Part shown: in pieces, positions 7,514 to 21,919 of the stretch
How the letters are laid out: the number at the start of each line of letters is the position of its first letter
Numbering within the stretch: position 1 is the first letter of the stretch
Assembly: GCA_965240325.2 (NCBI GenBank)
Contig: OZ251230.1
Coordinates: 2,356,001 to 2,420,000 of the forward strand
Length of the DNA stretch: 64,000 nt
Direction: 5' to 3'
Origin: Rebecca billardiae RCC1528
Lineage: Eukaryota > Protista > Haptophyta
Program-made: the position numbers and the translations under genes
The notes under the pieces: model-generated
Database searches by the model: none
What the model saw: only the letters and a program-made list of their open reading frames with translations
Told to the model about the DNA's origin: nothing

Positions 7514-8605
7514 TCAGTGCAGTAGCTGTCGCCCCTCATCGCGCTCCTGTCCGCTTCGTGCTCGGATCTTCGCCCGCCCATCGAGGATGGCACGCTCGAC
7601 CTCGGGATGCATCCAGCCGAAGCGCGCGTCCAGGCGCGTGCGCCCGACCAGCTTCTTGACGGGATGGAGCACCACCGCGGTGTCCCATGGCACGTCAGCC
7701 GCCTTGCGCTCGTCGCGGTTGCAGCAAAAGCGGGTGACGAGGTGCGGCTTCTTCATGTCAAATGCCTGCGCCTGGGGCATCTGCTCCCAGTCGCGGTTGC
7801 GCAGTGCAACGACGAGCGGCGGGAAAGAGCCAAGTGCCCAGAGCGGCTCGTGTGTGTTCTGCTCCAGCCAATACTCGACCTGAGCAGAAAGGTTCGCAGC
7901 CAGCCAGCGCCGCACGTCCACCAGCAGCACGCCTGCGTCGAGGCACGGCTGCTGCGGCGCCTCACGCAGCACGGCCTGCATCTTGGGCGCGCTCATGTTG
8001 ATGACCTTCTCGAGCCAGCAGTGGTCGCCGTGCTGCTGGGCGCTCGCCACTGCGTGGGGCGTGCGGGTGAGCGCGCCGTCGTAGAGCGGTCCTAGATCGT
8101 TGATGACGAGGGTGTCCGAGTCGAGGTAGAGGAAGCGCCGTAGCCCCAGCCGCTCGAAGATGGCCGGCACGTAGAAGCGCATGTAATTGGAGGCATGGCT
8201 GAATGTCGCACGGTTGCTCTGGTCCCGTATCCGCACACGCCGTGCACGCGTGACATCCCCAAGAGAGTCCGCGTGCAGGAGTACACGGCTCGCTCCGAAG
8301 AAGGCGACGAGGCGTTCGAGAGCGCGCTCTGAGACCGACGCGTTGTCTGTGAAGAGGTGGAAGCGCAGCCGTCTCGCGGTGCGGGGCGACGCGAAGCGCA
8401 GCGCCGACGCCATCGAGCGCACGACACGTCGAGTGTGTGTGGCGCCGGCAAATGTGTACACCACATGGATTTCCTCGTCATCGGGACGGCGCGCCATAGC
8501 TGCGGCTGACGGCGGCGACGTAATCGACGGGACCGTAGTCGCGAGCACCACGAGGCACGCCATGGCATCGACCCTCCAGACTGCTGCCGGGAGGCCGCCA
8601 TGCAT
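7514..8605 (-). CDS. Glycosyltransferase family 8 (GATL/LgtC-like) with N-terminal hydrophobic segment; start at 8605 or 8563
   Basis: Motifs RFHLFTD, SNYMRFYVP, RFLYLDSDTLV (DxD), AGVLLVDVRRW and LGSFPP. Confidence 0.85.
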   Translation of the reverse strand: MHGGLPAAVWRVDAMACLVVLATTVPSITSPPSAAAMARRPDDEEIHVVYTFAGATHTRRVVRSMASALRFASPRTARRLRFHLFTDNASVSERALERLVAFFGASRVLLHADSLGDVTRARRVRIRDQSNRATFSHASNYMRFYVPAIFERLGLRRFLYLDSDTLVINDLGPLYDGALTRTPHAVASAQQHGDHCWLEKVINMSAPKMQAVLREAPQQPCLDAGVLLVDVRRWLAANLSAQVEYWLEQNTHEPLWALGSFPPLVVALRNRDWEQMPQAQAFDMKKPHLVTRFCCNRDERKAADVPWDTAVVLHPVKKLVGRTRLDARFGWMHPEVERAILDGRAKIRARSGQERDEGRQLLH

Positions 8606-8997
8606 CGTGGGACGTGACGTGGTTGGGGCGGACGCATCACGCACGGGCAGGTTTAATTTTTCGGCGTTGGCGTTCGGCGTTCTCGTCGTTGTACTACTTG
8701 TACTGTACAGTCGTAAAGTACTGTAGTACAGCAGTACTGTAGAAGTTACTACTACTACTAACTTTACGCTACAGTACTGCTACTACTACAAGCGCTACCG
8801 TACGACAATAGTAGTCGGCAGTACTATTACTAGTAGCTAGAAGTACTACGACTACGGTAGTGAGTAGCTGAGTGCGTGATCCGGGCTGTCGTCGCCGCTG
8901 CCCGGCGACGACATGGCCATGCGCGGCAGCCCCGCTGACGCCAGCGCCGCCCGGCGCCACTGACGCAGTACGCAGAGCACTCGCAGTCGGTCGCACG

Positions 8998-9782
8998 TCA
9001 TTGCTTTGTGGGTGGGTACGGTGGTGGGGCTGCGCCGTCGCCAAGTGGGGTGCCGGCCACGGCCGGCGGCGGCTGAATCTGCTGCTGCTCCTGCTGCTGC
9101 TGCTGCGCGCCGGAGATGGCGCTCGTGAATGCGTTCAGCCCCGCCGTCAGACCGCTCGCCACCTTGTCCGTCACCTTGTGCTGCTCGTCGAATTGCTTGG
9201 CCTTGTGCGCGGCGTCCGTCACGGCCGCTTTTGTTTTGTCCAGGATGTGGTGCTGCTCGTCGAGCTCCTTGGCCTTGGCCAGCGTCTGCTTCGCGGCGTT
9301 CGAGACCTTCTCGCCGACGTGGTGCTCGCGGTCCACCGCCTTTGCCTTCTCGAACGCGGCGATCGCCGCGTCGCCGGTCGCCTTGGCCACATCGCCTACC
9401 TTGTCGGAGCGCGTGGCCGCGTAGGCCGCGCCCCCGGCGGCGACCGCGCCGACGAGCAGGCTGCCCGTGGCGATGGCCGCGACGCCTGCGCCCACGGCCG
9501 CAGCGCCGGCAAGCCGGCCGACGCCACCTGCCGAATCGACTGCATCCGCTGCCTTGCCCGCCACCTCCGCCGCCTTGGCGGCCTCAGCTGGGTTGTTCAT
9601 GGCCCACCTGCGCGCGCGAGCGCGCGCGGGTGCACGGCAGGCGTGAGTGCGCGAGCAGCAAGCGCAAGGGTTGGGCCTACGGCGTAAGCGGCGCGCGGCG
9701 CGCGGCGGGGCGAGCGCGGGGCGATGCGCGCGCACTCGAAGGCCTTGTTTTGGCCACTGCCGCCTGGTGGTGGTGCCGCCAT
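8998..9782 (-). CDS. Hypothetical 2-exon protein (exons 9782-9736 and 9607-8998) with an Ala/Gly hydrophobic segment and ~22-aa helical repeats (AKxxDEQHxxxDK)
   Basis: GT..AG intron 9735-9608 joins MAAPPPGGSGQNKAFE to WAMNNP in frame. Repeats: KAKAVDREHHVGEK, KAKELDEQHHILDK, KAKQFDEQHKVTDK. Confidence 0.75.
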
Positions 9783-9995: not shown

Positions 9996-12900
9996 CTACT
10001 TGCCCTTCTTCTTGCTCGCCTTCTTACTTTCGCTCTCCGTCGCCTGCTCCTGCAGCGCGCTGAGCGTGGTCGTCACCTTGTTGACCGCCGACTGCGCAGC
10101 CTCGCGATTCTTCGTGGCCTTGCCCAGCGCGACCGACTTGGCCCGCGACGCGAAGTTGAGCGAGTTGATCGTCTCCTTCACGTTGTACTGCGCCGGGCTC
10201 ACGTTGACGAACCTGCCCGGCACACACGCCAGCGCGCGAGTGCGCACGTGCGTGAGCGCGCATGCGCGCGCGGCCGTGTGGCGGCTGTGCGCCGCGCGCG
10301 CGCGCGCGCGGTGGCGCGCACATGAGCGTCTTCGAGTTGCCGCCCAGGCTGTCCTGCAGGAGGTACGTGAGCTTCGAGTCGCGGTACGGCACGTGCTTCT
10401 CGCCGTTCGCCAGCGCGGCGATCACCGTGCCGAGCGTCGTCAGCGACTTGTTGATCGCCGCGCCCTCCTTGGCCTGCTGGCCCGTCGCGTGCGACTGCGC
10501 GCAGCGCGCAGTCGAGCGGGCCGCGCGCGCATCGGGGCGGGCGGAGGGGGATGAGGCGGCGCGCAGCCGCGCGGGCGGCGCGCGCGCGCGCGCGGCTTCC
10601 CCCGCGCCGCACCTTCGCCAGCCGCTCCGAGCCCGCCAGGTCGACGAGCGACAGCTTGCCGACCCACGTCTCCCCGGCCTCGTTGGTCGTTCGCGCGACG
10701 AGCGTGACCACCATGTGTGAGCGAGACGAGTGCTCGTTCAGGTCGGTGACGGCCTTCTTGCGGTTCTCGTTGCCTGCGCCGCGGCGGGGGGCGCGTTACC
10801 GCGGCACGCGCGCGCGCGCGCACGCACACGCCCTTGTGTGAGTGCCCCGCCCTTGTCCGCGCGACGCGGCGCGCGCGCGCGGCGACCCCGAGGGCGCGGG
10901 CGCGCGCTCGCGGGCGCGCGCTCGCACCGTTGGAGATGAGATTGCGCACGTGCGAGGCGGTGTGGACGTTGATCGACGTGCAGTCCTTGACGTACATGCC
11001 GAGCATCGTGTCCTTGAGGATCTCGTACTTCTTGCCCGAGTGGTCCTGCGCACGGCGCGAGAGATTGCGGGCGCTCACACGGCCGGTCACGCGCGCGCGC
11101 GCGCGCGCGCGGCGCCCACGCCGCGAGCCCGCGCGCGCGCACGGCTGCGCGCGCGTGCGCGCACCTCGCTCGGATCGGCGAGCAGGTCCTTGACCTGCTC
11201 GTTGTAGATCTCGACCATGCCGAGGTACAGCTCGGTCTGCAGCCCCTGCTCCGTCCGCTCCGCCGCCACCTCGAACAGCCGCGAGACCGCACGGTACGTG
11301 AGCCCGGGCTGCTCGCCCTCGCCCTCCATCGTGTACGTCTTGCCCGACCCCGACTGGCCGTATGCGAAGATGCACACGTTGTAACCGTCGAGCACGGAGG
11401 TCATGAGCGGCTCGGTGTCGCGGAAGACGTCCTCCTGCGTCGAGGCCGCGCCGTACACCATGTTGAACTCGAACCGCCGCGTCGGGTTCCGCGTGTCGTC
11501 CTTGTCCGTCACGATCATGTTGGTCTCGTCCGGCGTCGCGACCGCGACGCCGTTCGAGCCGTCAACGGCGAGCTCCTGCTTGTTGGGCGGCCGTACTCGG
11601 CAGTACACGCGCAGGTTGCCGACCATCTCCTGCAGCTGGTTGTGCAGCGCCTTGCGCAGGAAGAACTCGTTCCCGTACTTCCGCGCGAACTCGGTCGCGC
11701 GGTCCTCCGCCGCCGCGAGCTCCTTCTTCGCCTGCTCGAGCTGCGACTGCAGTGTGCCGACCGAGTTAGCCATGCGCTCGTTGGCGTCGTCGAGCGATGC
11801 CTGCAGCCGCTCGCGCTCGGCGCGCAGCTCGGCGACCTCGGCGGAGAGCTTGTCCTCCTGCTCGTGCAGCTCGGTGGCGAGCTTCTCGGCCTCCTCGCGC
11901 GCCTCCTTCATCGCCTCGTCCGCCTGCTCCCGCGCCTTCTGCTCCTTCTTCAGCGCGCCCTTCGCGTCCCGCAGCATGGCCGCCGTCTCGTCCAGCTGAT
12001 ACTGCGCACTCTCCAGCTGCTCCGAGAGCTGTGTCGACCGCTGCTCGGCAGAGGCGGAGGCGTCGGCGAGCGCGCGCTCGGCGGTGCTCGAGCGCTCGTC
12101 GAGCTCGGCGGAGAGCCGGTCGCGCTCGGTCGAGAGCTCCGAGAGCGCCGCCTGCAGCTTCTCCAGCTCGGCGGAGGAGGCGCCCCGGTCGGAGCGAGCG
12201 GCGGCGAGCTCGGCGGCGAGCGCCTCGCGAGCGTCTGTTGCGGCGCGCGCCTCCGCGCTCGCGCGCTCGGCGTCCGAGCGCGCGGTGGCGAGCTGCTGCG
12301 CGAGCTCGAGGCGCTCCTGCTCGGAGACCTTCTGCCCGCCGCGCGCCGACATCTGCAGCTCGAGCTCGTACTTGTTCCGCTCGGACATCGACGCCTCCCA
12401 CTTCGCTCGCAGCTCGTCCGCCGCTCGCTTCTGATTAGCCAGTGCCTCGCGCAGGGCCGCGAGCTCCTGCGACGAGCCGCCGCCGCCGCCGGAGGCGCGC
12501 AGCGTGTCGAGCTCGGCGGCGAGCGCGTTCTTGGAGGAGACGTCGGCCTCCCACTGCGCCTTCCACCGCGCCGCCGCCTGCTGCGCCTCGGCCAGCTCCT
12601 CCGCGCGCGCCTGCAGGTCGAAGGCGAGCTTCTCAGACGCCTTGCGGTGTTCGGAGTGCGCCGCGGTGAGCTGCGCGCTCAGCTCGCGCCGCGTCTTCTC
12701 GGCCTCCTCCGCCTTGAGGTCGGCGGCGGCGAGGGCCTCGGCGAGGCGCTGCTTCATCGACTCCACGTCGCCCGCCTTCGCGTCCAGCCGGCCCTCCACC
12801 TCCGCCCGCTTCGCCGTCGCGCGCGCGTGCTCCGCCTCCATCGCGGCGCGCGCGGCAATCTCCTTCTCCGCCTGCGCCCGCCAGTGCGCCGCCGACGCCT

Positions 12901-14351
12901 TCTCGGAGTTGGCGGTGGTCTCGGCGGCCTCCTTGGCGGAGGAGAGGGTCGTGGCGCGCTCGCGCGCGTCGTCCGCCTCCTGCCGCAGCCGCGAGAGCTC
13001 GTCGAGCAGCGCCGCCTTCTCCTCGTCCGCGCCGGACGCAATCTGCATGCACAGCGCGCGCCACTGCTCGGGCGACTGGTCGGCGGCGGGCGGGAGCGCC
13101 GACGAGAGAGCGCCGCCGCCGCCCGCCGCCTGCAGCGCGAGCTGCGCGGCGGCGGCGGCGGAGCCCATGTCGACGGCGGTGCCGTCGCCCTCGGCGTGCC
13201 CCTGCAGCGCCGCCTGCGCCTCGCCCAGCGCGCCGCGCAGCCGCTCGTTGTCCTGCATCGCAATCGACCATTCGGTCTTCCAGCCCTCCGCCTGCATTTG
13301 CAAAATCGCCACCTCCTGCAAAAATAGCTGCGAGTTCACGTCGAGCTGCGACTCGTCCATCCCGCCGAACGCGCCGTAGTACGAGTTGTCGAACCAGTTG
13401 TCCACGCCGCCGCCGTCCGCGCCGTCACCCTGCGTCGCCAGGTCCGCCGACTTGAGCTCCTGCGCTCGCTCGAGGTTGAGCGCGCCCAAGCCGAGCCCCG
13501 TGCCGGCCGCGCCGGCCGCGCCGCCGTTTGCGCCGCCGCCGAGCGGCGGCAGCGCGAGCGACGGCGTGGGCGCGCCGCTGCCGCCGTCGGCCGCGGCGGG
13601 GTGGAGCGAGGGGAGCGCCCGCGGCGGCAGCGGCCCCACCCCCTCCTCCTCCTCCTCCTCCTCCTCGTCCACGCGCCGCGCGCGCGGGCTCTCCGGAATG
13701 GAAGCCCCAGCGGCGCGCGCGAGCGCGCGCGGCGTGCGCGCCGTCCCGTCGTTCCTCCGCATCGGGCCGCCGCGCGGCGTGAAGCCCGAGGCGAGGCCGG
13801 CGAGCGGGCCGGCGGCGTGCAGCATCTTCGGGTTGTTCATGAACAGCGCGCGCGTGCGCGGCGTCTGCCCGCCGTCGCCGCCGCTCCCCGGCACCACCGA
13901 GCCGCGCGGCGTGAACCCTGGCACAGGCTGACCCTGCCGTAGAGCAATCCTTGTCTTGGATTGCTTCTTCTCGATCGGCGCGATCTCCTCCCAGCGGTCG
14001 ACGAGCGCCTTCATCTCGGCCTGCAGCGCGAGGAGCGGCGGGCGCATCTCGTCCGACACCATCGCCGCCGACGCGCCCGCCGTGCGCGGCGTCGCGCCGC
14101 CCGCGAGCTGCGAGCCGAGAAACACATCGATGCGCTTGAGCCAGCCGCGGCAGTCCTGTGACGCCTGTGTCGCCTCGGCTAGGTCCAGGTTTGCGAGCGC
14201 GCCGTCGTCGGAGGCGGAGAGGGCGTGCTTGAGCCGGTCGACGTCCTCCTGCATCACGTCGATCTCCGCGCGGATCGCCACGTCGTTCGTCCCGCCGCCG
14301 CCCCCGCCGCCCCCGCCGCCGCCGCCGAGCAGCGCGGACGCGCCGCCGCCC

Positions 14352-14385
<34 letters not shown>

Positions 14386-17300
14386 CCGCGCCGCCGCCAG
14401 CGTCCAGTCCAGCGGTGAGCTTGGCGTGCGGCTTGGGCAGGTGGTACCCCTCGCGGTCGAGCATGTCGTACGCCTCGACGAACCCCGCCGTCTGCGCGCC
14501 GTCCCCGTACCAGTCCGCCCAGTTCGAGACGAGCTGCAGGATGGTGGAGCGGACGAGAGCTTTCTCGGAAGCGTCCTTCCGCGCGAGGTCGACCAACCGT
14601 CGGATCCACCGCTCCGAGGCGACCTGCTGACGAAACACGGCGTCGCACGCGGGCACGCACCACTCGAGCAGCATGAGCACCGCGAGCGTCGAGCGCGTGC
14701 GCGACTCCTCCGTCGAGCCCGCGCGCAGCCCGTTCTTGAGCACGCGCAGCGCGGCCGAGGCCGAGTGCACCTTGGAGCGGCCGGGTGCCTGCACGAGCGC
14801 CTCGATTTGCACCGCGCACTCGACCACCTCGGTCCACGCCTCGCGCACCGCGGCCTTCATCGCGGTGCCGAGCACCTCCATCATGCGCGACTCGGCCTCG
14901 ACGAGCTGCTCTTCCTCCTCCCCCGAGTCCAGCGCGCCGCCGCCCTCCTCCTCCTCCTCCTCCTCCTCCTCCTCCAGCTTCGATTTGGACTCCGCCTTCG
15001 CCGCCATCTTTTGTGCAAACATCTGCTGCTTCTGAGCCATCAGCTGCTGCGACTCGGCGGAGATGGCGGAGGCGCCGGCGTACTCGTCGTCGTCGTCGGC
15101 GGAGGCGGAGCGCTGCCGCCCGGTCAGGTACCCGCGCGACGCCGCGATCGTCGCCGCGCGCTGGTTGTGCGACGCCGACTTGCCCTTGCGCGCCGTGAGC
15201 AGCGCCGAGCGATTCGCCTGCGCACGCTCCTCCTTCGCCTCGAGCTGCTCTGCGGTTAGTGCGTCCTTCTTGCGCGTGCGCGCGGCGAGCCTCGCCTCCA
15301 TGCGCGAGACGAAGGCCTTGTCGCGCGGGGTCGCGCCCGAGCCGCCGCCGCCGCCGCCGTCACCGCCGCCGCCCGACTTCATGTCCACCTCGATCACGCC
15401 CAATCTGCGGATCTGCGCGAGCACGTCCGCGACCTCCGGCGAGTCCGCGCCGAGCGCGAACGTGAGAACCGACTTTGCTTCCTCCAGCGTCATCTCGGCG
15501 GCCTCGGCCTTGCCCTGCCGGTGGTACGCGGCGCCGAGCGCGGCGAGGTGCCGCCCGACCCGCGCGTGGTCCGGCCCGAGCGCCGCCTTGTCGATCGCGT
15601 ACGCGCGCTTGTACAGCGCGACCGCGTCGTCCTCGCGCCGCTGCGAGACGTAGAGCTGAGCCAATCGGACGAGCGGGTCGACGACGCGCGCGTCCTCGGC
15701 GCCGCAGACGGACTCAATGATGGTGATGGCGTTCATGTAGAGCAGCAGCGCCTCCTTGACGAGGCCGCGCGCCGCGTACCCCTCGCCCAGCTCGGTGAGC
15801 CGCGCGGCGACGGCGGGCAGCACCGTCGTCATCTGCGCGCCCTGCTGCTGCGCCGCGGCCGCGTCGGCGCGCGCACCCTGGAGCTTGGCTCGCGCCTCCG
15901 CGACCTGCGCGCGCAGCTGGTCCGACTCGGCCTGCGCGGAGGCGCGGAGCGTGGCCATCGCCTGCTCGAGCCCCGCGCCCGACTCCACCCCCTGGATCTG
16001 CGCCGAGAGCTCCGCGATCTGCGCCTCGATCCCCGCCGCCTCCTTGTCCGCCGCCGCGCGCGCCGCGGCCACCTGCGCCTTGGCACCCTCGAGCTCGCGA
16101 GCGCACTCGGCCGCATGCTCCTGCTCCTTGCCCACGTTGGCGCGGAGCTCGGCGACGTGCGCCTCGAGCTTGGCGAGCTGCGACGGCTCCGGCGTCATCT
16201 GCTCGAGCATCTCCGCCTGCGCCTCCGACGTCGGCGCCTCGACCGACGCGAGGTCAGCCTGCAGCCGCGTCGCAAGCGCTTTCGGATCGGCCGCGAGCGC
16301 GGCCTCTGGTCGGATCTTGGCGCGCGCCGCGATGCCGGCGAGCTCGAGCGCGGCGGCGGTCTCGTAGAAGTCGGCGCGGTCGGGCGAGACGCAGAGCACG
16401 AGCGCCGCGCGCCCGCCCTCCAGCCCCAGCGCGCCCGAGAGCAGCCGCGTCAGCTTCGAGTCGCGGAACGGCGGGCGGTCCTTCTTGCGCTTCGCCATGT
16501 GAGCGACGGCGCGCTCGAACGCCTTCAGCGAAGTGTTGAGCGCGCAGAAGTCCTCGACGGTGAGGCCGGAGACGCCGGAGACGCGCAGCGGCGGCGGCGG
16601 GGCGAGGTCGACCACGTACAGCACCGGGTACTCCGCCGACTCCGCCTCGATCCGCACCGACGCGATCAAGTGGGAAAGTTCCGCGAACGGGCGCGCGACG
16701 CCCGCGGTCGCTCGCGAGCGCGCAGCCGCCGCGGTCCGCACGAGCGCGTCGAGCTCGGCGACGGCGCGCACGCGCTGCCAGTGGCAGCCGTCGAGGCGCA
16801 CGGCGCCACGCGCGCTCTCGCCCAGCGCCAGCTCGCCGCCGCCCTTCCCCGCGCCCGCCGCACCCGCCGCCGCGAGCGCGTCCGTGAAGCCCTCCAGATA
16901 GAGAAGAGTGAACGACACCTCAACGCCCGCGTCGGGCGGCGCGAGCTTGAGCGCGCGCTCGACGGCGCGGTGGAGCAGGCCGGGCGCGCCGGGCGCGCCG
17001 AAGGCGGTGCTCGTCGTGCCCGCGCCCGCCTGCCCGTAGCACGCGATGCACCCCGCCGCGCCCTCGGCGCTGCCCGCCGTGCCGGCGAGTGCGGCCACAA
17101 CCATCTCATCAACCGCTTGCGCGCTCAGCTCGGCGAGCGAGCGCGGGCCGCCGCCGGGGGCGAAGACGCCGCTCAGCGCGACGGGGCTGCCCTCGGGCTG
17201 GCCGTTGAAGTCGACCACCCACGCCTCACGCCGCTCGGGCGCGACCTCCACGACGCTGCGCGCGGGCGCGGGCGCGCGAGCGCGGCAGCGCGCGTGGCGT

Positions 17301-17806
17301 GGGCATCACGTGTGAGTGCGCGCGCGCGCGCGCGGGTGAGCCGCCGGGCCGCGCACGCCGCGCGCGCGGCGCGAGGGCGAGGCGTGGCACCCGCGCACGC
17401 GCGTGCGCGCGTACCTCGGCCCGGTCTCCGTCGGCTCTCGCACGCGCAGGAAGACGCGCACAGCCTCGAGCGGCTTGCCCTCGCGATCCTCCTCCTCCAG
17501 ATCCGAGGCGGCGGAGGAGGAGGACTTGTTGATCGGGGGCGCGCGCGGCGGCGCGAGGCCGTGCGGAGACTTGGGCGCGCGGCTGCCCGTCGGCGTGCGC
17601 GGCCGAGGCGGCGCCGAGCGGCCGGCGGACGCCGCGCGCTGCCCAGGCGGCGTTGAGTCGGCGTGCGCGCGCGAAGGCGGCCGCTGCGGGCCGGCCGAGG
17701 TCGTGCCCGGCGGTGTCGTGGGCGGCCGGCTGCCCGGTGGCGTCGGTGGGCGTAATCGCCCCTCGCGCGCCGACTTTGGCGTGCCCGAGCGCTTCTGGCT
17801 CGACAT
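9996..17806 (-). CDS. Very large kinesin-14-type protein with degenerate N-terminal motor domain, coiled coil, TPRs, VHS-like domain, coiled coil and intact C-terminal motor. Exons 17806-17415, 17255-11165, 11045-10928, 10773-10613, 10494-10322, 10212-9996
   Basis: C-terminal motor: [72 protein letters not shown]. All five GT-AG introns keep frame. N-terminal domain: [30 protein letters not shown]. Confidence 0.9.
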
Positions 17807-18024
17807 GGCGCCGAGCGGCTCCACACGCCGGCCGACGGTGCCACTGCCACGCTTGGCACAGTTTCCAAACTCGAGCGAGCAGCTGCCACTGTGCAAATAT
17901 GGGCCGTTTGGGATTTTGGCCTGGTCGTTATTCGATCTCGACATCTCGTCCGATCTGCGAAGCGCGTGCGATGGCAGATGAACTACCCGGGAACCAGGTC
18001 CAGTTGCTTGAACGGGGTACGTGA

Positions 18025-19731
18025 ATGATGGCGGATTCGACGACTAGCCCTGCGGTCAGGCTCCTCTTACGCAAGTCGGCGCGTGGGGACGCGCGTGCGA
18101 CGTTCCTTCTGGCGCGGCGGGCTGAGGATGGCGAGGGCATCGCACAGGACCACCGCGAAGCCTTTCGCCTGTACACCCTCGCCGCTGAGCGCAGCTTTGC
18201 AGATGCGCAGTCGAAGATGGGCCACATCTACGTGAACGGCGCGCTTGGGCAGCCAAAGGACCTCGAGGCAGCAGCGCGCTGGTACCGGCTGGCGGCCGAG
18301 CATGGCTACGCTCCGGCGCAGTGCAATCTGGGCCTGCAGTACGCACAAGGCGAGGGCGTGCCGCAGGACTGGGGCGAGGCGGTGCGCTGGTTCCGGCTGG
18401 CGGCCGAGCAGGGCCACGCACTCGCGCAGTGCAATCTGGGCGTGCGGTACGCACGAGGCGAGGGCGTGCCGCAGGACTGGGGCGAGGCTGTGCGCTGGTA
18501 CCGGCTGGCGGCCGAGCAGGGCGACGCTCAGGCGCAGTGCAATCTGGGCGTGCGGTACGCACGAGGCGAGGGCGTGCCGCAGGACTGGGGCGAGGCTGTG
18601 CGCTGGTTCCGGCTGGCGGCCGAGCAGGGCGACGCTCAGGCGCAGTGCAATCTGGGCGTGCGGTACGCACGAGGTGAGGGCGTGCCGCAGGACTTGGGCG
18701 AGGCTGTGCGCTGGTTCCGGCTGGCGGCCGAGCAGGGCCACGCACTCGCGCAGTGCAATCTGGGCGTGCAGTACGCACAAGGCGAGGGCGTGCCGCAGGA
18801 CTGGGGCGAGGCGGTGCGCTGGTACCGGCTGGCGGCCGAGCAGGGCTACGCACTCGCGCAGTGCAATCTGGGCCTGCAGTACGCACAAGGCGAGGGCGTG
18901 CCGCAGGACTGGGGCGAGGCTGTGCGCTGGTTCCGGCTGGCGGCCGAGCAGGGCGACGCTCAGGCGCAGTGCAATCTGGGCGTGCGGTACGCACGAGGCG
19001 AGGGCGTGCCGCAGGACTGGGGCGAGGCTGTGCGCTGGTACCGGCTGGCGGCCGAGCAGGGCGACGCTCAGGCGCAGTGCAATCTGGGCGTGCGGTACGC
19101 ACGAGGCGAGGGCGTGCCGCATGACTGGGGCGAGGCGGTGCGCTGGTTCCGGCTGGCGGCCGAGCAGGGCTACGCACTCGCGCAGTGCAATCTGGGCGTG
19201 CGGTACGCACGAGGCGAGGGCGTGCCGCAGGACTGGGGCGAGGCTGTGCGCTGGTACCGGCTGGCGGCCGAGCAGGGCGACGCTCAGGCGCAGTGCAATC
19301 TGGGCGTGCGGTACGCACAAGGCGAGGGCGTGCCGCAGGACTTGGGCGAGGCTGTGCGCTGGTACCGGCTGGCTACGCAGGGAGGGAGCGCATATGGGCA
19401 CTTTCGGCTTGGAGAGCTGACGCTGCACGGCACGGTAGTGGAGCGTGACGTGGAGGAGGCAGCTCGGCTGTTGCACCGTGGCCAAGAGCTCGATCCAGCC
19501 CTCGGAGACAGTGTACGCGAGGTCCTGGCCGTGGAGGCTGGGGAGCGTGACGTGGTCTCCACGTGCTGCATCGCCTGCGGACGGACAGGCCGTGGTCTCA
19601 AGAAGTGCGAGCGGTGCCATGTGGCGGTCTTCTGCTCGCGTGAGCACCTGCGCAGCTCGTGGAAGGTGCACAAGCCCCACTGCAACGCGTGGGCTTCGCA
19701 GTGCGATGAGGACTCCGAGGAGGCAAGGTGA
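18025..19731 (+). CDS. Sel1-like repeat protein with C-terminal MYND zinc finger (copy 1; 10 near-identical 36-aa repeats)
   Basis: Repeat unit AQCNLGxxYAxGEGVPQDWGEAVRWxRLAAEQG with 108-bp period. C-terminus CIAC-x9-CERC-x5-CSREH-x4-WKVHKPHC. Confidence 0.92.
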   Translation: MMADSTTSPAVRLLLRKSARGDARATFLLARRAEDGEGIAQDHREAFRLYTLAAERSFADAQSKMGHIYVNGALGQPKDLEAAARWYRLAAEHGYAPAQCNLGLQYAQGEGVPQDWGEAVRWFRLAAEQGHALAQCNLGVRYARGEGVPQDWGEAVRWYRLAAEQGDAQAQCNLGVRYARGEGVPQDWGEAVRWFRLAAEQGDAQAQCNLGVRYARGEGVPQDLGEAVRWFRLAAEQGHALAQCNLGVQYAQGEGVPQDWGEAVRWYRLAAEQGYALAQCNLGLQYAQGEGVPQDWGEAVRWFRLAAEQGDAQAQCNLGVRYARGEGVPQDWGEAVRWYRLAAEQGDAQAQCNLGVRYARGEGVPHDWGEAVRWFRLAAEQGYALAQCNLGVRYARGEGVPQDWGEAVRWYRLAAEQGDAQAQCNLGVRYAQGEGVPQDLGEAVRWYRLATQGGSAYGHFRLGELTLHGTVVERDVEEAARLLHRGQELDPALGDSVREVLAVEAGERDVVSTCCIACGRTGRGLKKCERCHVAVFCSREHLRSSWKVHKPHCNAWASQCDEDSEEAR

Positions 19732-20057
19732 ACTTCGGACACTACAGTTATTTACTAATAAGACGAATATAAGCGAGACGCGGCACACAGCAGCTGTACT
19801 CAGTATTCTCGACGGCGGTACTACTGGTAGTAGCTATAACTATATAGTCCGCTAGACGGTGCCTGCTAACGCCATGTCATGTCTCACTCGGCTGCTCCGG
19901 TCTCGGCTGAGCCATCACTAAGACACTACCAGTCGTCAAATGAGTTACGGTTATTGTATCATTATCAATAATAACGACAATATTATTCATCAGCAATCTG
20001 CTGCTAACTAGTCGTGCTATAGTACAGTTTTACTTATATAGCGCAGTATAGCGCTAT

Positions 20058-20201
<144 letters not shown>

Positions 20202-21919
20202 TGCTTGTATGCTGATGCACATCGGATGGCATCGGCACGACTGATGCAGTAGTCTACTTGCCTGAGTCACTGAGTACTTCATCAGTGGTGTCTGAACTCA
20301 TCGCCATCGCCATCGGCTCATCAGGAGGCTTGTCAAGCATGCGCTCTGCTCGGCTAAACCGGGGGGGGTGCCTCCGGCCAAAGATGGTCCTTTGCTCCGG
20401 CGGCAGTCCGGTGATGACAGATGAACAACGACGCAGCAAGCAGCGTATTTTGCATGCATGCACTAAAGTTTTCTGGTGAACACGGCTTTAAACAATTTTA
20501 ATTCGTGAGAAAGCCCTGGGAGACCCAGCTCCGACCCCCTTTAATTGGTGTGACGTACTGCTGTCCCAAGTAATACCTGAGTAGGAATACGAAGAATGGG
20601 CCCTCAAACGTTTTTTGATTAGGCACGCCTCCGGAATCGAGAACGCACGTCGTTACCTTTTTGAGCGCGCGCCATAGGGATGTCGTTGCGATTCCCACCT
20701 ATTTGTTGACGCTTTTCTACGACCATCCCGGCTCCCCAAGTCGAGGAACCGCGACGCACGTGTGCTTTCGCCGCCGCGCCGCGTGCGCTCGGCACACACG
20801 ATTGAGTATGACGAACGAGCGCGCCGCTGAAGGAGGCGCAGGCCGCGCGCGACACGCAGAATGGCGCTTAGCCGGCGTGGCTCGACGACGCTGCCGGCAC
20901 TCGCGCTCGCACACTGACGTGCGCGACCGAGGAACAGCTCCGCGGGCCTCGGCCGAACCCAGCGCCGGATGCCATCGTCGGCGTCGAGAGGAACTGCGCC
21001 GATCTGGCGGAGATCCAGCGGCACGTGGCGGCGATCAAGCAGCCGCAACCGCATCAGATGACGTGCACGAGCGGCCTCATGGAGAAGCTCGTACCACAAG
21101 CCTACCATAAGCCACCCGCTCGCCGACTTGCCCGACTGACTACTCGCGGAGTTAACTCCGCCCTGGCTCGTCATCAACGGGCGCGGCCTTCGAGCCGACA
21201 CCCGCGCCGCCCGCGGCTCGCGGCGCCATCGCGAAGGTGCGTGCCCGCCGGCGCGAGCTGCACAACACAACATGCACACCGACGTGAGCCGCTCGTACCA
21301 CGTCGTGCCCGACGGGCCGTGCTCAGCGACGGCTGCAGGCCAGTCTACTCGCCGTGCAGTCGGTTGTGCCCTGCCGGCCTGCGCCACTCGCCCCGCGCCT
21401 ACAGCCGGTGGGCCATCCGCGGTGCGTGCCGTTGCCGTGCCGTCGTGCCCGAGCGGCCGTGCGCAGCGACGACCGCATCGACGCGCGCCTCGCCGTGCGC
21501 CTCGGTCGGCCTTGCAGAAGTGCCGCGCTGCCGCGCCTGGCTTAATCGCACGCTCGACTGCGGCGCGCCACCGGATGATACCGTCAGTCAGCGCTGAACG
21601 GCCAACTCGTCCCATCGTCGTCGGGTCTGCCGGCCCTGGGAAGCTTCTCCGTCGCGTCCTAGACGCGCTGTGTTCGACCAGCCCCACCGGGACAAGGCCG
21701 CAAGGCCCCCGCTGTTTATTATGCACTTCGATGCAGTGACGATGGTCGCATGGCGTCGCATCAACGATTCACAGACGACAGCGTCGTGTCGGATGGCCGG
21801 TCGTCCTCCCTGTAGTGCTTTTTCGGACGAGCGAAAATGTATTTCGGCGAACGATGATGGCGGCGGCCATCGGTCGGCCATCACAGCAGTGAGCCTCCAC
21901 GCAAGTGCGCAGCGCGCAC

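Follow-up and report, generated by a model that had tools for sequence, protein, structure and literature searches.

The 64,000-nucleotide window analyzed here (Rebecca billardiae RCC1528, contig OZ251230.1, positions 2,356,001 to 2,420,000 of the forward strand) contains, on its minus strand, a kinesin-14 gene of a haptophyte alga that carries two kinesin domains in one predicted chain: a degenerate domain near the N-terminus and an apparently intact motor at the C-terminus. The gene lies in a GC-rich genome and comprises six exons, with a predicted coding sequence of 7,152 nt (2,383 aa). We propose, with a probability of roughly 0.58, that this kinesin-14 bears a former N-type kinesin in its tail, whose dead heads would act as an ATP-independent microtubule anchor while the live heads slide or focus a second microtubule, and that the TPR and VHS domains between them recruit cargo or regulators. 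Of this proposal, we infer microtubule binding by the dead head, dimerization, directionality, and sliding.

Both kinesin domains are predicted to lie on a single polypeptide and not to have been brought together by the gene model. A preliminary description of the window had placed them in one spliced frame with a shared exon of 6.1 kb, and exon 2 is indeed a stop-free exon of 6,091 nt. The respective minus-strand open reading frame (ORF), located at 11087–17251, has 2,054 codons and 0 stops; in 2,000 shuffles of the same letters, the exon-2 frame contained 32.7 stops on average and 15 at the minimum. The GC content is 0.91–0.98 at third codon positions and about 0.5 at second positions in every 200-codon block of this frame, and because the codon periodicity is uniform, the entire exon-2 span, including the Gly-rich linkers, is taken as coding. 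Exon boundaries were read from the genomic sequence alone. Support for the joins comes from the arithmetic of the phases and from relatives that lack the introns, and searches were run exon by exon.

The exon phases are consistent across all joins. Exon 1 is joined to exon 2 in frame via a GT..AG intron, and both the exon-1 sequence and the position of this intron are kept at the orthologous locus L001. Exons 3–6 align without gaps, end to end, onto the uninterrupted kinesin-14 motor of relatives. All five introns are of the GT..AG type, 109–159 nt long, and about 85% GC (0.83–0.87), that is, more GC-rich than the exons. Four of the five donors have a near-identical GTGCG start, with GTACG in intron 1, and all introns are rich in alternating GC runs.

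The N-terminal domain is predicted to adopt the kinesin motor fold. Over its first 350 residues, the protein part encoded by the big exon matches the Pfam family Kinesin (PF00225) with an E-value of 4e-28 and a score of 98.8 bits (cut-off 29.3), covering profile positions 71–324 of 327. Strand beta-1, absent from this part, is supplied by exon 1, and the interval 16320–17470 assigned to the domain in the preliminary description brackets these two pieces of the pseudo-motor correctly. In the PDB, the domain is closest in sequence to KIF22 (E 6e-22), and kinesin-1, KCBP, kinesin-2, and KIF7 come next. An AlphaFold model built from a 44-sequence alignment has a predicted local distance difference test (pLDDT) score of 86.3 and a predicted template modeling (TM) score of 0.87, and a Foldseek search with this model retrieved kinesin motor domains exclusively (E about 1e-17, TM 0.6–0.74). 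Thus the kinesin fold claimed earlier for the N region is borne out in silico by Pfam, AlphaFold, and Foldseek, and the contrary outcome named in advance, an N region with some other fold, was not found.

The same domain is predicted to be catalytically dead. A P-loop devoid of its Lys, a replaced switch I, and a broken switch II had been reported, and all three were confirmed, as GQAGAGTT, AELSH, and DLAPPP, respectively. The neck-linker latch Asn of active relatives is also substituted in the alignment, an assignment made with moderate confidence. The microtubule-binding motif said to be kept in this domain is present in L12/alpha-5 at 16439–16471 on the minus strand, and PxRDSKLT together with the basic L12 cluster is kept in all orthologs.

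Conservation within the dead head was computed across 11 sequences as the mean pairwise identity per segment. The P-loop, a position covered by 10 of the orthologs, differs in almost every lineage: its Lys has given way to Thr, Ala, or Arg, or, in one lineage, is followed by Glu. An exception to this degeneration is the lineage of P0180, whose P-loop continues to match GxxxxGKS. No ortholog has kept switch I or switch II, and the identity in switch I is 0.23 compared to 0.38 for the whole dead head. The identity reaches 0.56–0.63 in L11, alpha-4, and L12-alpha-5 (up to 0.70 if the switch II remnant is included). Residues 216–276 contain 15 of the 18 invariant columns; the L11–alpha-5 stretch (16421–16591) accounts for 13 of the 18, or for 15 when the adjacent switch II remnant is counted. 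At the switch II position, the clade has its own motif [DEQ]L[AS]xP, usually with a second Pro, and Cys236 and Met252 are invariant in it. In active kinesins, the nucleotide motifs are the most conserved elements, the reverse of the pattern seen here. The microtubule-binding elements described as retained are hence the best-conserved part of the dead head across its 11 orthologs, which suggests, though does not prove, an ATP-independent microtubule binder.

The C-terminal domain is, judging from its sequence, an intact kinesin-14-type motor. In line with the earlier claim that it has all motifs, the neck, P-loop, switch I, switch II, and L12/alpha-5 were found across exons 2–5. Pfam matches to Microtub_bd and Kinesin cover aa 1862–2031 of the big ORF and continue in exons 3–6. 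The kinesin-14 neck directly precedes the motor and follows a long probable coiled-coil stalk. For the part of the motor in exon 2, the top PDB matches are Ncd, KCBP, Kar3, KIFC3, and KIFC1 (E 7e-32 to 5e-26), all of them above every N-kinesin. The motor is presumably minus-end-directed, as judged from family membership only.

The layout is conserved in relatives. A word search with the N domain yielded P0001 (Logan, locus L001), which aligns with residues 1–2030 at 54% identity in a single tblastn alignment, and P0178–P0182 were recovered by a search with the middle region of the protein. Among the latter, P0181 (7,518 nt) and P0182 (7,227 nt) each consist of an uninterrupted ORF encoding both kinesin domains and the TPR repeats, with VHS also found in P0182. 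Collinearity from the pseudo-motor through to the kinesin-14 motor, on one strand, was seen in loci L001, L010, and L011, the latter two having all blocks in order, and L008 is collinear as far as the end of its contig. Overall, the order of the two domains is kept in at least five contigs. The distribution of orthologs, listed as a check in the preliminary description, thus reveals a two-domain layout conserved in several relatives (P0181, P0182, L001, L010, L011).

A profile hidden Markov model search of 1.84 billion representatives produced 26 proteins below 1e-30, the top group being degenerate like the window protein. The sole named member of the family is KAJ1633903.1, a 372-aa "P-loop NTPase, partial" from Pavlovales sp., and public annotation otherwise misses the gene. 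The respective Pavlovales locus, L009, has so many N gaps that the complete gene is not visible. In the source "merc" (ERR1719181), a 105-aa fragment shares 91% identity with the dead head of P0181. This catalog is presumably built from marine metatranscriptomes, which would imply transcription of the dead head in a relative.

The middle of the protein contains modules that were absent from the earlier reading of the gene. The neck-like segment behind the pseudo-motor is, by alignment, common to a family of active TPR-tailed kinesins. The TPR assignment is marginal in the window protein (Table 1), and orthologs P0010 and P0179 match TPR_12 with 51.5 and 45.8 bits, respectively (cut-off 30.1). 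The VHS model has pLDDT mostly above 90, with two blocks at 75–83, and its Foldseek matches are the VHS domains of GGA3, GGA1, TOM1, STAM/STAM2, and Hrs (TM 0.65–0.75 by target). The modeled block has 40 invariant columns among 10 orthologs, all but three of them inside the VHS interval, and VHS identity to distant orthologs is up to 72%. No Pfam match was found in the predicted three-helix bundle that follows or in the conserved block at aa 1294–1420. Conservation of the TPR and VHS modules suggests binding of cargo or regulators as well. At the N-terminal end, the exon-1 extension of 96 residues contains 17 Lys and Arg, 2 Asp and Glu, and 24 Pro residues; the basic microtubule-binding tails of classical kinesin-14s have a composition of this kind.

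Table 1. Predicted features of the two-kinesin gene (positions in the window)
Feature	Position	Strand	Basis
Whole predicted coding region	9996–17806	-	Six exons, phases checked; gap-free mapping of exons 3–6
Exon 1: start codon, basic Pro/Ser/Thr-rich extension, pseudo-motor strand beta-1 (17415–17470)	17415–17806	-	Homologous exon in L001
Introns	17256–17414, 11046–11164, 10774–10927, 10495–10612, 10213–10321	-	Boundaries read from sequence
Exon 2 (6,091 nt): pseudo-motor, both coiled coils, TPR, VHS, first half of kinesin-14 motor	11165–17255	-	Single open frame
Pseudo-motor, exon-2 part	16318–17255	-	Pfam Kinesin, PDB phmmer, AlphaFold, Foldseek
P-loop remnant GQAGAGTT, Walker-A Lys replaced by Thr	17012–17035	-	Sequence; departs from GxxxxGK[ST]
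Switch I position, AELSH vs. SSRSH	16670–16684	-	Alignment
Switch II position, DLAPPP vs. DLAGSE; Gly and Glu replaced by Pro	16592–16609	-	Alignment; departs from DxxGxE
L11, helix alpha-4, L12 (basic KRKK cluster), alpha-5: predicted microtubule-binding face	16421–16591	-	Best-conserved part of domain
Post-motor helix and probable coiled coil 1 (aa about 323–500)	15752–16285	-	AlphaFold helices 323–349; coiled coil from composition
KLC/NPHP3-like TPR repeats	15467–15673	-	Pfam TPR_10 27.9 bits (cut-off 27.5, marginal); TPR_NPHP3 E 4.6e-14
VHS domain, eight-helix superhelix	14447–14926	-	Pfam PF00790 36.7 bits (cut-off 29.8), AlphaFold, Foldseek
Predicted three-helix bundle after Gly-rich linker, GAT-like by position only	13937–14290	-	AlphaFold helices 229–256, 262–286, 311–346 of model
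Conserved block (aa 1294–1420)	12992–13372	-	Collinear tblastn matches in L008, L010, L011
Long probable coiled-coil stalk (about 440 residues) before kinesin-14 neck	11672–12991	-	Composition; kept in L001, L010, L011
Kinesin-14 neck (11588–11620) and first motor half, P-loop GQSGSGKT (11336–11359)	11165–11668	-	Pfam Kinesin and Microtub_bd
Exon 3, kinesin-14 motor	10928–11045	-	Mapping onto relatives
Exon 4: switch I SSRSH (10715–10729), switch II DLAGSE (10625–10642)	10613–10773	-	Sequence
Exon 5: alpha-4 and L12/alpha-5 motif (10357–10389)	10322–10494	-	Sequence
Exon 6: motor end, short Lys-rich tail, TAG stop	9996–10212	-	Sequence

Based on this domain content, we suggest the following mechanism. 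The tail of the kinesin-14 would be an entire former N-type kinesin, consisting of a motor, a stalk, and kinesin light chain (KLC)-like TPR repeats, in which the motor would have lost ATP binding and hydrolysis and retained the microtubule-holding surface. The long coiled coils would probably produce a parallel homodimer whose two ends differ: one has two dead heads and the basic Pro-rich extensions, the other a pair of live kinesin-14 heads. In this arrangement, the dead heads may form a nucleotide-independent, rigor-like microtubule anchor, the live heads may slide or focus a second microtubule toward the minus ends, and the TPR and VHS modules in the middle of the chain may recruit cargo or regulators. 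Tight microtubule binding is a property of kinesin rigor mutants with changes in the P-loop or in switch II. The preliminary description had arrived at an ATP-independent anchor tethered to a minus-end motor in one chain. The single chain, the predicted kinesin fold, the loss of every catalytic motif, the intact C motor, and the best-conserved microtubule elements speak for that part of the claim; its analogy to yeast Kar3-Vik1/Cik1 holds only loosely.

Several considerations weigh against the crosslinking anchor. Firstly, the conservation of L11, alpha-4, and alpha-5 is no proof of microtubule binding, because these elements are also conserved in active kinesins for structural reasons. Secondly, a degenerate kinesin domain can lose microtubule binding, as in the plant KAC proteins, and with prolines in place of Gly-Ser-Glu in switch II, alpha-4 could be held in a geometry that does not allow binding. 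Thirdly, VHS and TPR are very strongly conserved, which suggests that the main role may be the binding of cargo and not crosslinking. Finally, an internal promoter may give rise to a separate kinesin-14 isoform.

The third of these considerations bears on the main competing model, which we regard as somewhat unlikely. The protein may be a tethered cargo transporter, in which VHS, perhaps with a GAT-like bundle, and TPR bind membrane or ubiquitinated cargo, and the dead head sits on the microtubule used by the live heads, as a processivity tether for a kinesin-14 that would otherwise be non-processive, with no crosslinking involved. TPR_12-type repeats bind cargo in kinesin light chains. The VHS domain, with its 40 invariant columns and identity of up to 72% to distant orthologs, is the most conserved block of the protein and has the fold of the GGA/TOM1/STAM VHS domains. 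A precedent exists for the tether too, as Kar3 is made processive by non-catalytic heads (PMC4338441). On the other hand, the three-helix bundle has no Pfam match, and a distance of about 1,500 residues between the heads would be large for tethering to the same track.

A quite improbable model is that the dead head no longer binds microtubules and has become a protein-interaction or autoinhibitory module, which might, for example, fold back on the live motor or bind a partner such as free tubulin. None of the nucleotide-sensing elements coupled to alpha-4 is left, and the signature of the clade ([DEQ]L[AS]xP, the usual second Pro, and invariant Cys236 and Met252) could be a new binding site. 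Autoinhibition of motors by kinesin tails is common (PMC12905500). However, PxRDSKLT and the basic L12 cluster are kept in all orthologs, which is hard to explain without a tubulin contact. Scarcely credible is an artifact in which a degenerate kinesin gene and a neighboring kinesin-14 gene were read as one: the gene model does come from genomic DNA alone, and the public annotation of the Pavlovales relative has only the 372-aa partial protein, but a stop-free 6.1-kb frame of uniform coding periodicity joins both domains, relatives have them in uninterrupted 7.2–7.5-kb ORFs, the order is kept in at least five contigs, and the Pavlovales locus is riddled with N gaps.

Within its own genome, the dead head is most closely related to two active N-kinesins (L003, L004) with 34% identity and E about 2e-34, the next kinesin being at 2e-14. 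Both have all catalytic motifs (GQTGAGKT, SSRSH, DLAGSE). The active family also includes P0016, a Chrysochromulina parva protein labeled "kinesin family protein 5", and several of its members combine an N-kinesin with a KLC-like TPR_12 tail. The named relatives, from Pavlovales sp. and Chrysochromulina, are all haptophytes, and a green algal source was rejected on this ground.

We constructed a tree of 41 kinesin sequences with support from the Shimodaira–Hasegawa-like approximate likelihood ratio test (SH-aLRT); it comes from a quick search and has long branches, so its grouping is indicative. The dead heads fall into a single, long-stemmed clade (SH-aLRT 100), which groups with the active TPR-tailed kinesins, apart from all other kinesins (SH-aLRT 96). 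The C-terminal kinesin-14 motors constitute a separate clade (SH-aLRT 100), far from the dead heads. Since the pseudo-motor clade stands beside the TPR-kinesins and far from the kinesin-14 motor, the gene appears to be an old fusion. Its N half (head, stalk, and TPR) is, by its sequence relationships, predicted to be a whole former kinesin fused to a half composed of VHS, stalk, and kinesin-14, and both fusion and inactivation seem to be older than the three deep subclades. An origin of the dead head by duplication of the gene's own kinesin-14 motor was also considered and was ruled out by the grouping with TPR-tailed N-kinesins.

A further, unlikely scenario is that haptophytes carry an unrecognized class of kinesin-kinesin chimeras, in which an N-type (plus-end-type) kinesin was fused head-to-tail with a kinesin-14, first yielding two opposed live motors; in the dead-head family, silencing would then have made the plus-end motor a permanent anchor of the rigor type. 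If true, it would document in nature how a motor became a microtubule-associated protein while part of a functioning motor, with a possible role in microtubule arrays particular to haptophytes, e.g., flagellar roots or the haptonema.

A second apparent two-motor gene was observed at locus L013 (G000:C17:860500-870499, minus strand, about L013 2262–7429). Its N motor is kinesin-1-like (GQTGSGKT, SSRSH, DLAGCE) and is followed by a long Ala-rich stalk and a C-terminal kinesin-14-like neck and motor (GQTGAGKT, SSRSH, DLAGAE). This locus shares with the dead-head family the order of an N-kinesin and a C-terminal kinesin-14-like motor on one strand in one apparent gene, whereas both of its motors keep the catalytic motifs and neither groups in the tree with the corresponding motor of the family. 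Double-kinesin chains therefore seem to recur in the lineage, and L013 still looks like the two-live-motor stage of the chimera scenario.

Other multiple-motor arrangements were also noticed. The predicted chains P0015, P0028, P0034, and P0011 have at least two kinesin P-loops each, P0011 having seven partial repeats; they may be gene-caller fusions of tandem genes or further multi-motor kinesins. Two kinesin-14-like motor matches with identical scores (E 1.6e-34) are situated 4.3 kb apart on the plus strand (G000:C5:3199901-3200416 and G000:C5:3204210-3204725), and this pair reflects either a tandem duplication of very recent date or a duplication in the assembly.

In the window, the start of the kinesin gene (17806, minus strand) is head to head with a Sel1-repeat/MYND-finger gene starting at 18025 on the plus strand, with 12 Sel1 repeats (Pfam E 4e-112). 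The region of about 220 bp between them (17807–18024) is likely a bidirectional promoter. At the orthologous loci of two relatives, the place of the Sel1-MYND gene, directly upstream on the opposite strand, is taken by a PAP2 phosphatase gene (L001 473–1084, L009 8990–9667). Downstream of the kinesin gene is a 376-aa ORF with a glycosyltransferase family 8 domain (7514–8644, minus strand; Pfam E 6e-16). An Ala/Lys-rich 245-aa ORF with repeated DEQH motifs and no Pfam match (8998–9735, minus strand) lies between it and the kinesin stop. A long (TA)n-type microsatellite at 20017–20282, seen as Ile-Tyr runs in ORFs, lies in an AT-richer island (GC 0.59) in a window that is otherwise 70% GC.

No description of a natural chain with two kinesin domains was found in the literature searched, large kinesin surveys included; this coverage is incomplete and the result is not proof of absence. 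Kinesin-14s organize spindles and other arrays, the passive tail holding one microtubule while the motor pulls another, and the yeast precedent demonstrates that a dead kinesin-like head can tune a kinesin-14; the window chain would combine both ideas with cargo-adaptor domains. It may serve as a natural, clonable test case for what a nucleotide-free kinesin head can do as an anchor, for the decay of motors into microtubule-binding proteins, and for the microtubule systems of haptophytes, a major group of marine phytoplankton whose cytoskeletal motors are almost unstudied.

Degraded ATPase motifs are found in a number of stand-alone kinesins, including kinesin-11 KIF26/VAB-8, Smy1, Costal2/KIF7, plant KAC, and trypanosome KIN-B, that are reused as static binders or scaffolds. 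Unlike the window protein, none of them is known to have a second live motor in the same chain. The haptophyte TPR-tailed N-kinesins (L003/L004, P0016) share the post-motor neck and the motor-stalk-TPR order with the dead-head half; in contrast to it, their catalytic motifs are kept, and they have neither VHS nor a kinesin-14 half.

In the yeast Kar3-Vik1/Cik1 complexes, a non-catalytic, microtubule-binding partner with a kinesin fold works with a catalytic kinesin-14 head (PMC3384419, PMC4338441). The likeness consists in the association of a catalytic kinesin-14 with a kinesin-fold domain that does not use ATP and that, in the window protein, is a putative microtubule binder. The yeast complexes are formed by two polypeptides whose heads are neighbors, both at one end of the heterodimeric coiled coil, whereas here the dead head would be in the same chain, at the opposite end, about 1,500 residues away. 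Further, Vik1 and Cik1 lack recognizable kinesin sequence motifs, whereas the dead head of the window protein has clear kinesin homology (Pfam E 4e-28) and, unlike the yeast partners, appears to descend from an N-type TPR-tailed kinesin, that is, from another family.

Kinesin-14s of the Ncd/HSET (KIFC1)/KlpA/ATK5 type have an ATP-independent microtubule-binding tail and follow a crosslink-and-slide logic (PMC11297315, PMC2867311). The window protein resembles them in its C-terminal minus-end-type motor, its long coiled coil, and the putative second, nucleotide-independent microtubule site at the N-terminal end, as well as in the basic Pro-rich N-terminal extension. The tail site of the known proteins is a short basic unstructured region, whereas the tail of the window protein consists of a folded pseudo-kinesin, TPR, and VHS. 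Their ATP-independent tail appears to be a nearer analogy than Kar3-Vik1/Cik1. Kinesin-14s with a passive site are thus already known, and what would be new here is a kinesin-14 whose passive second microtubule site is a dead kinesin head in cis.

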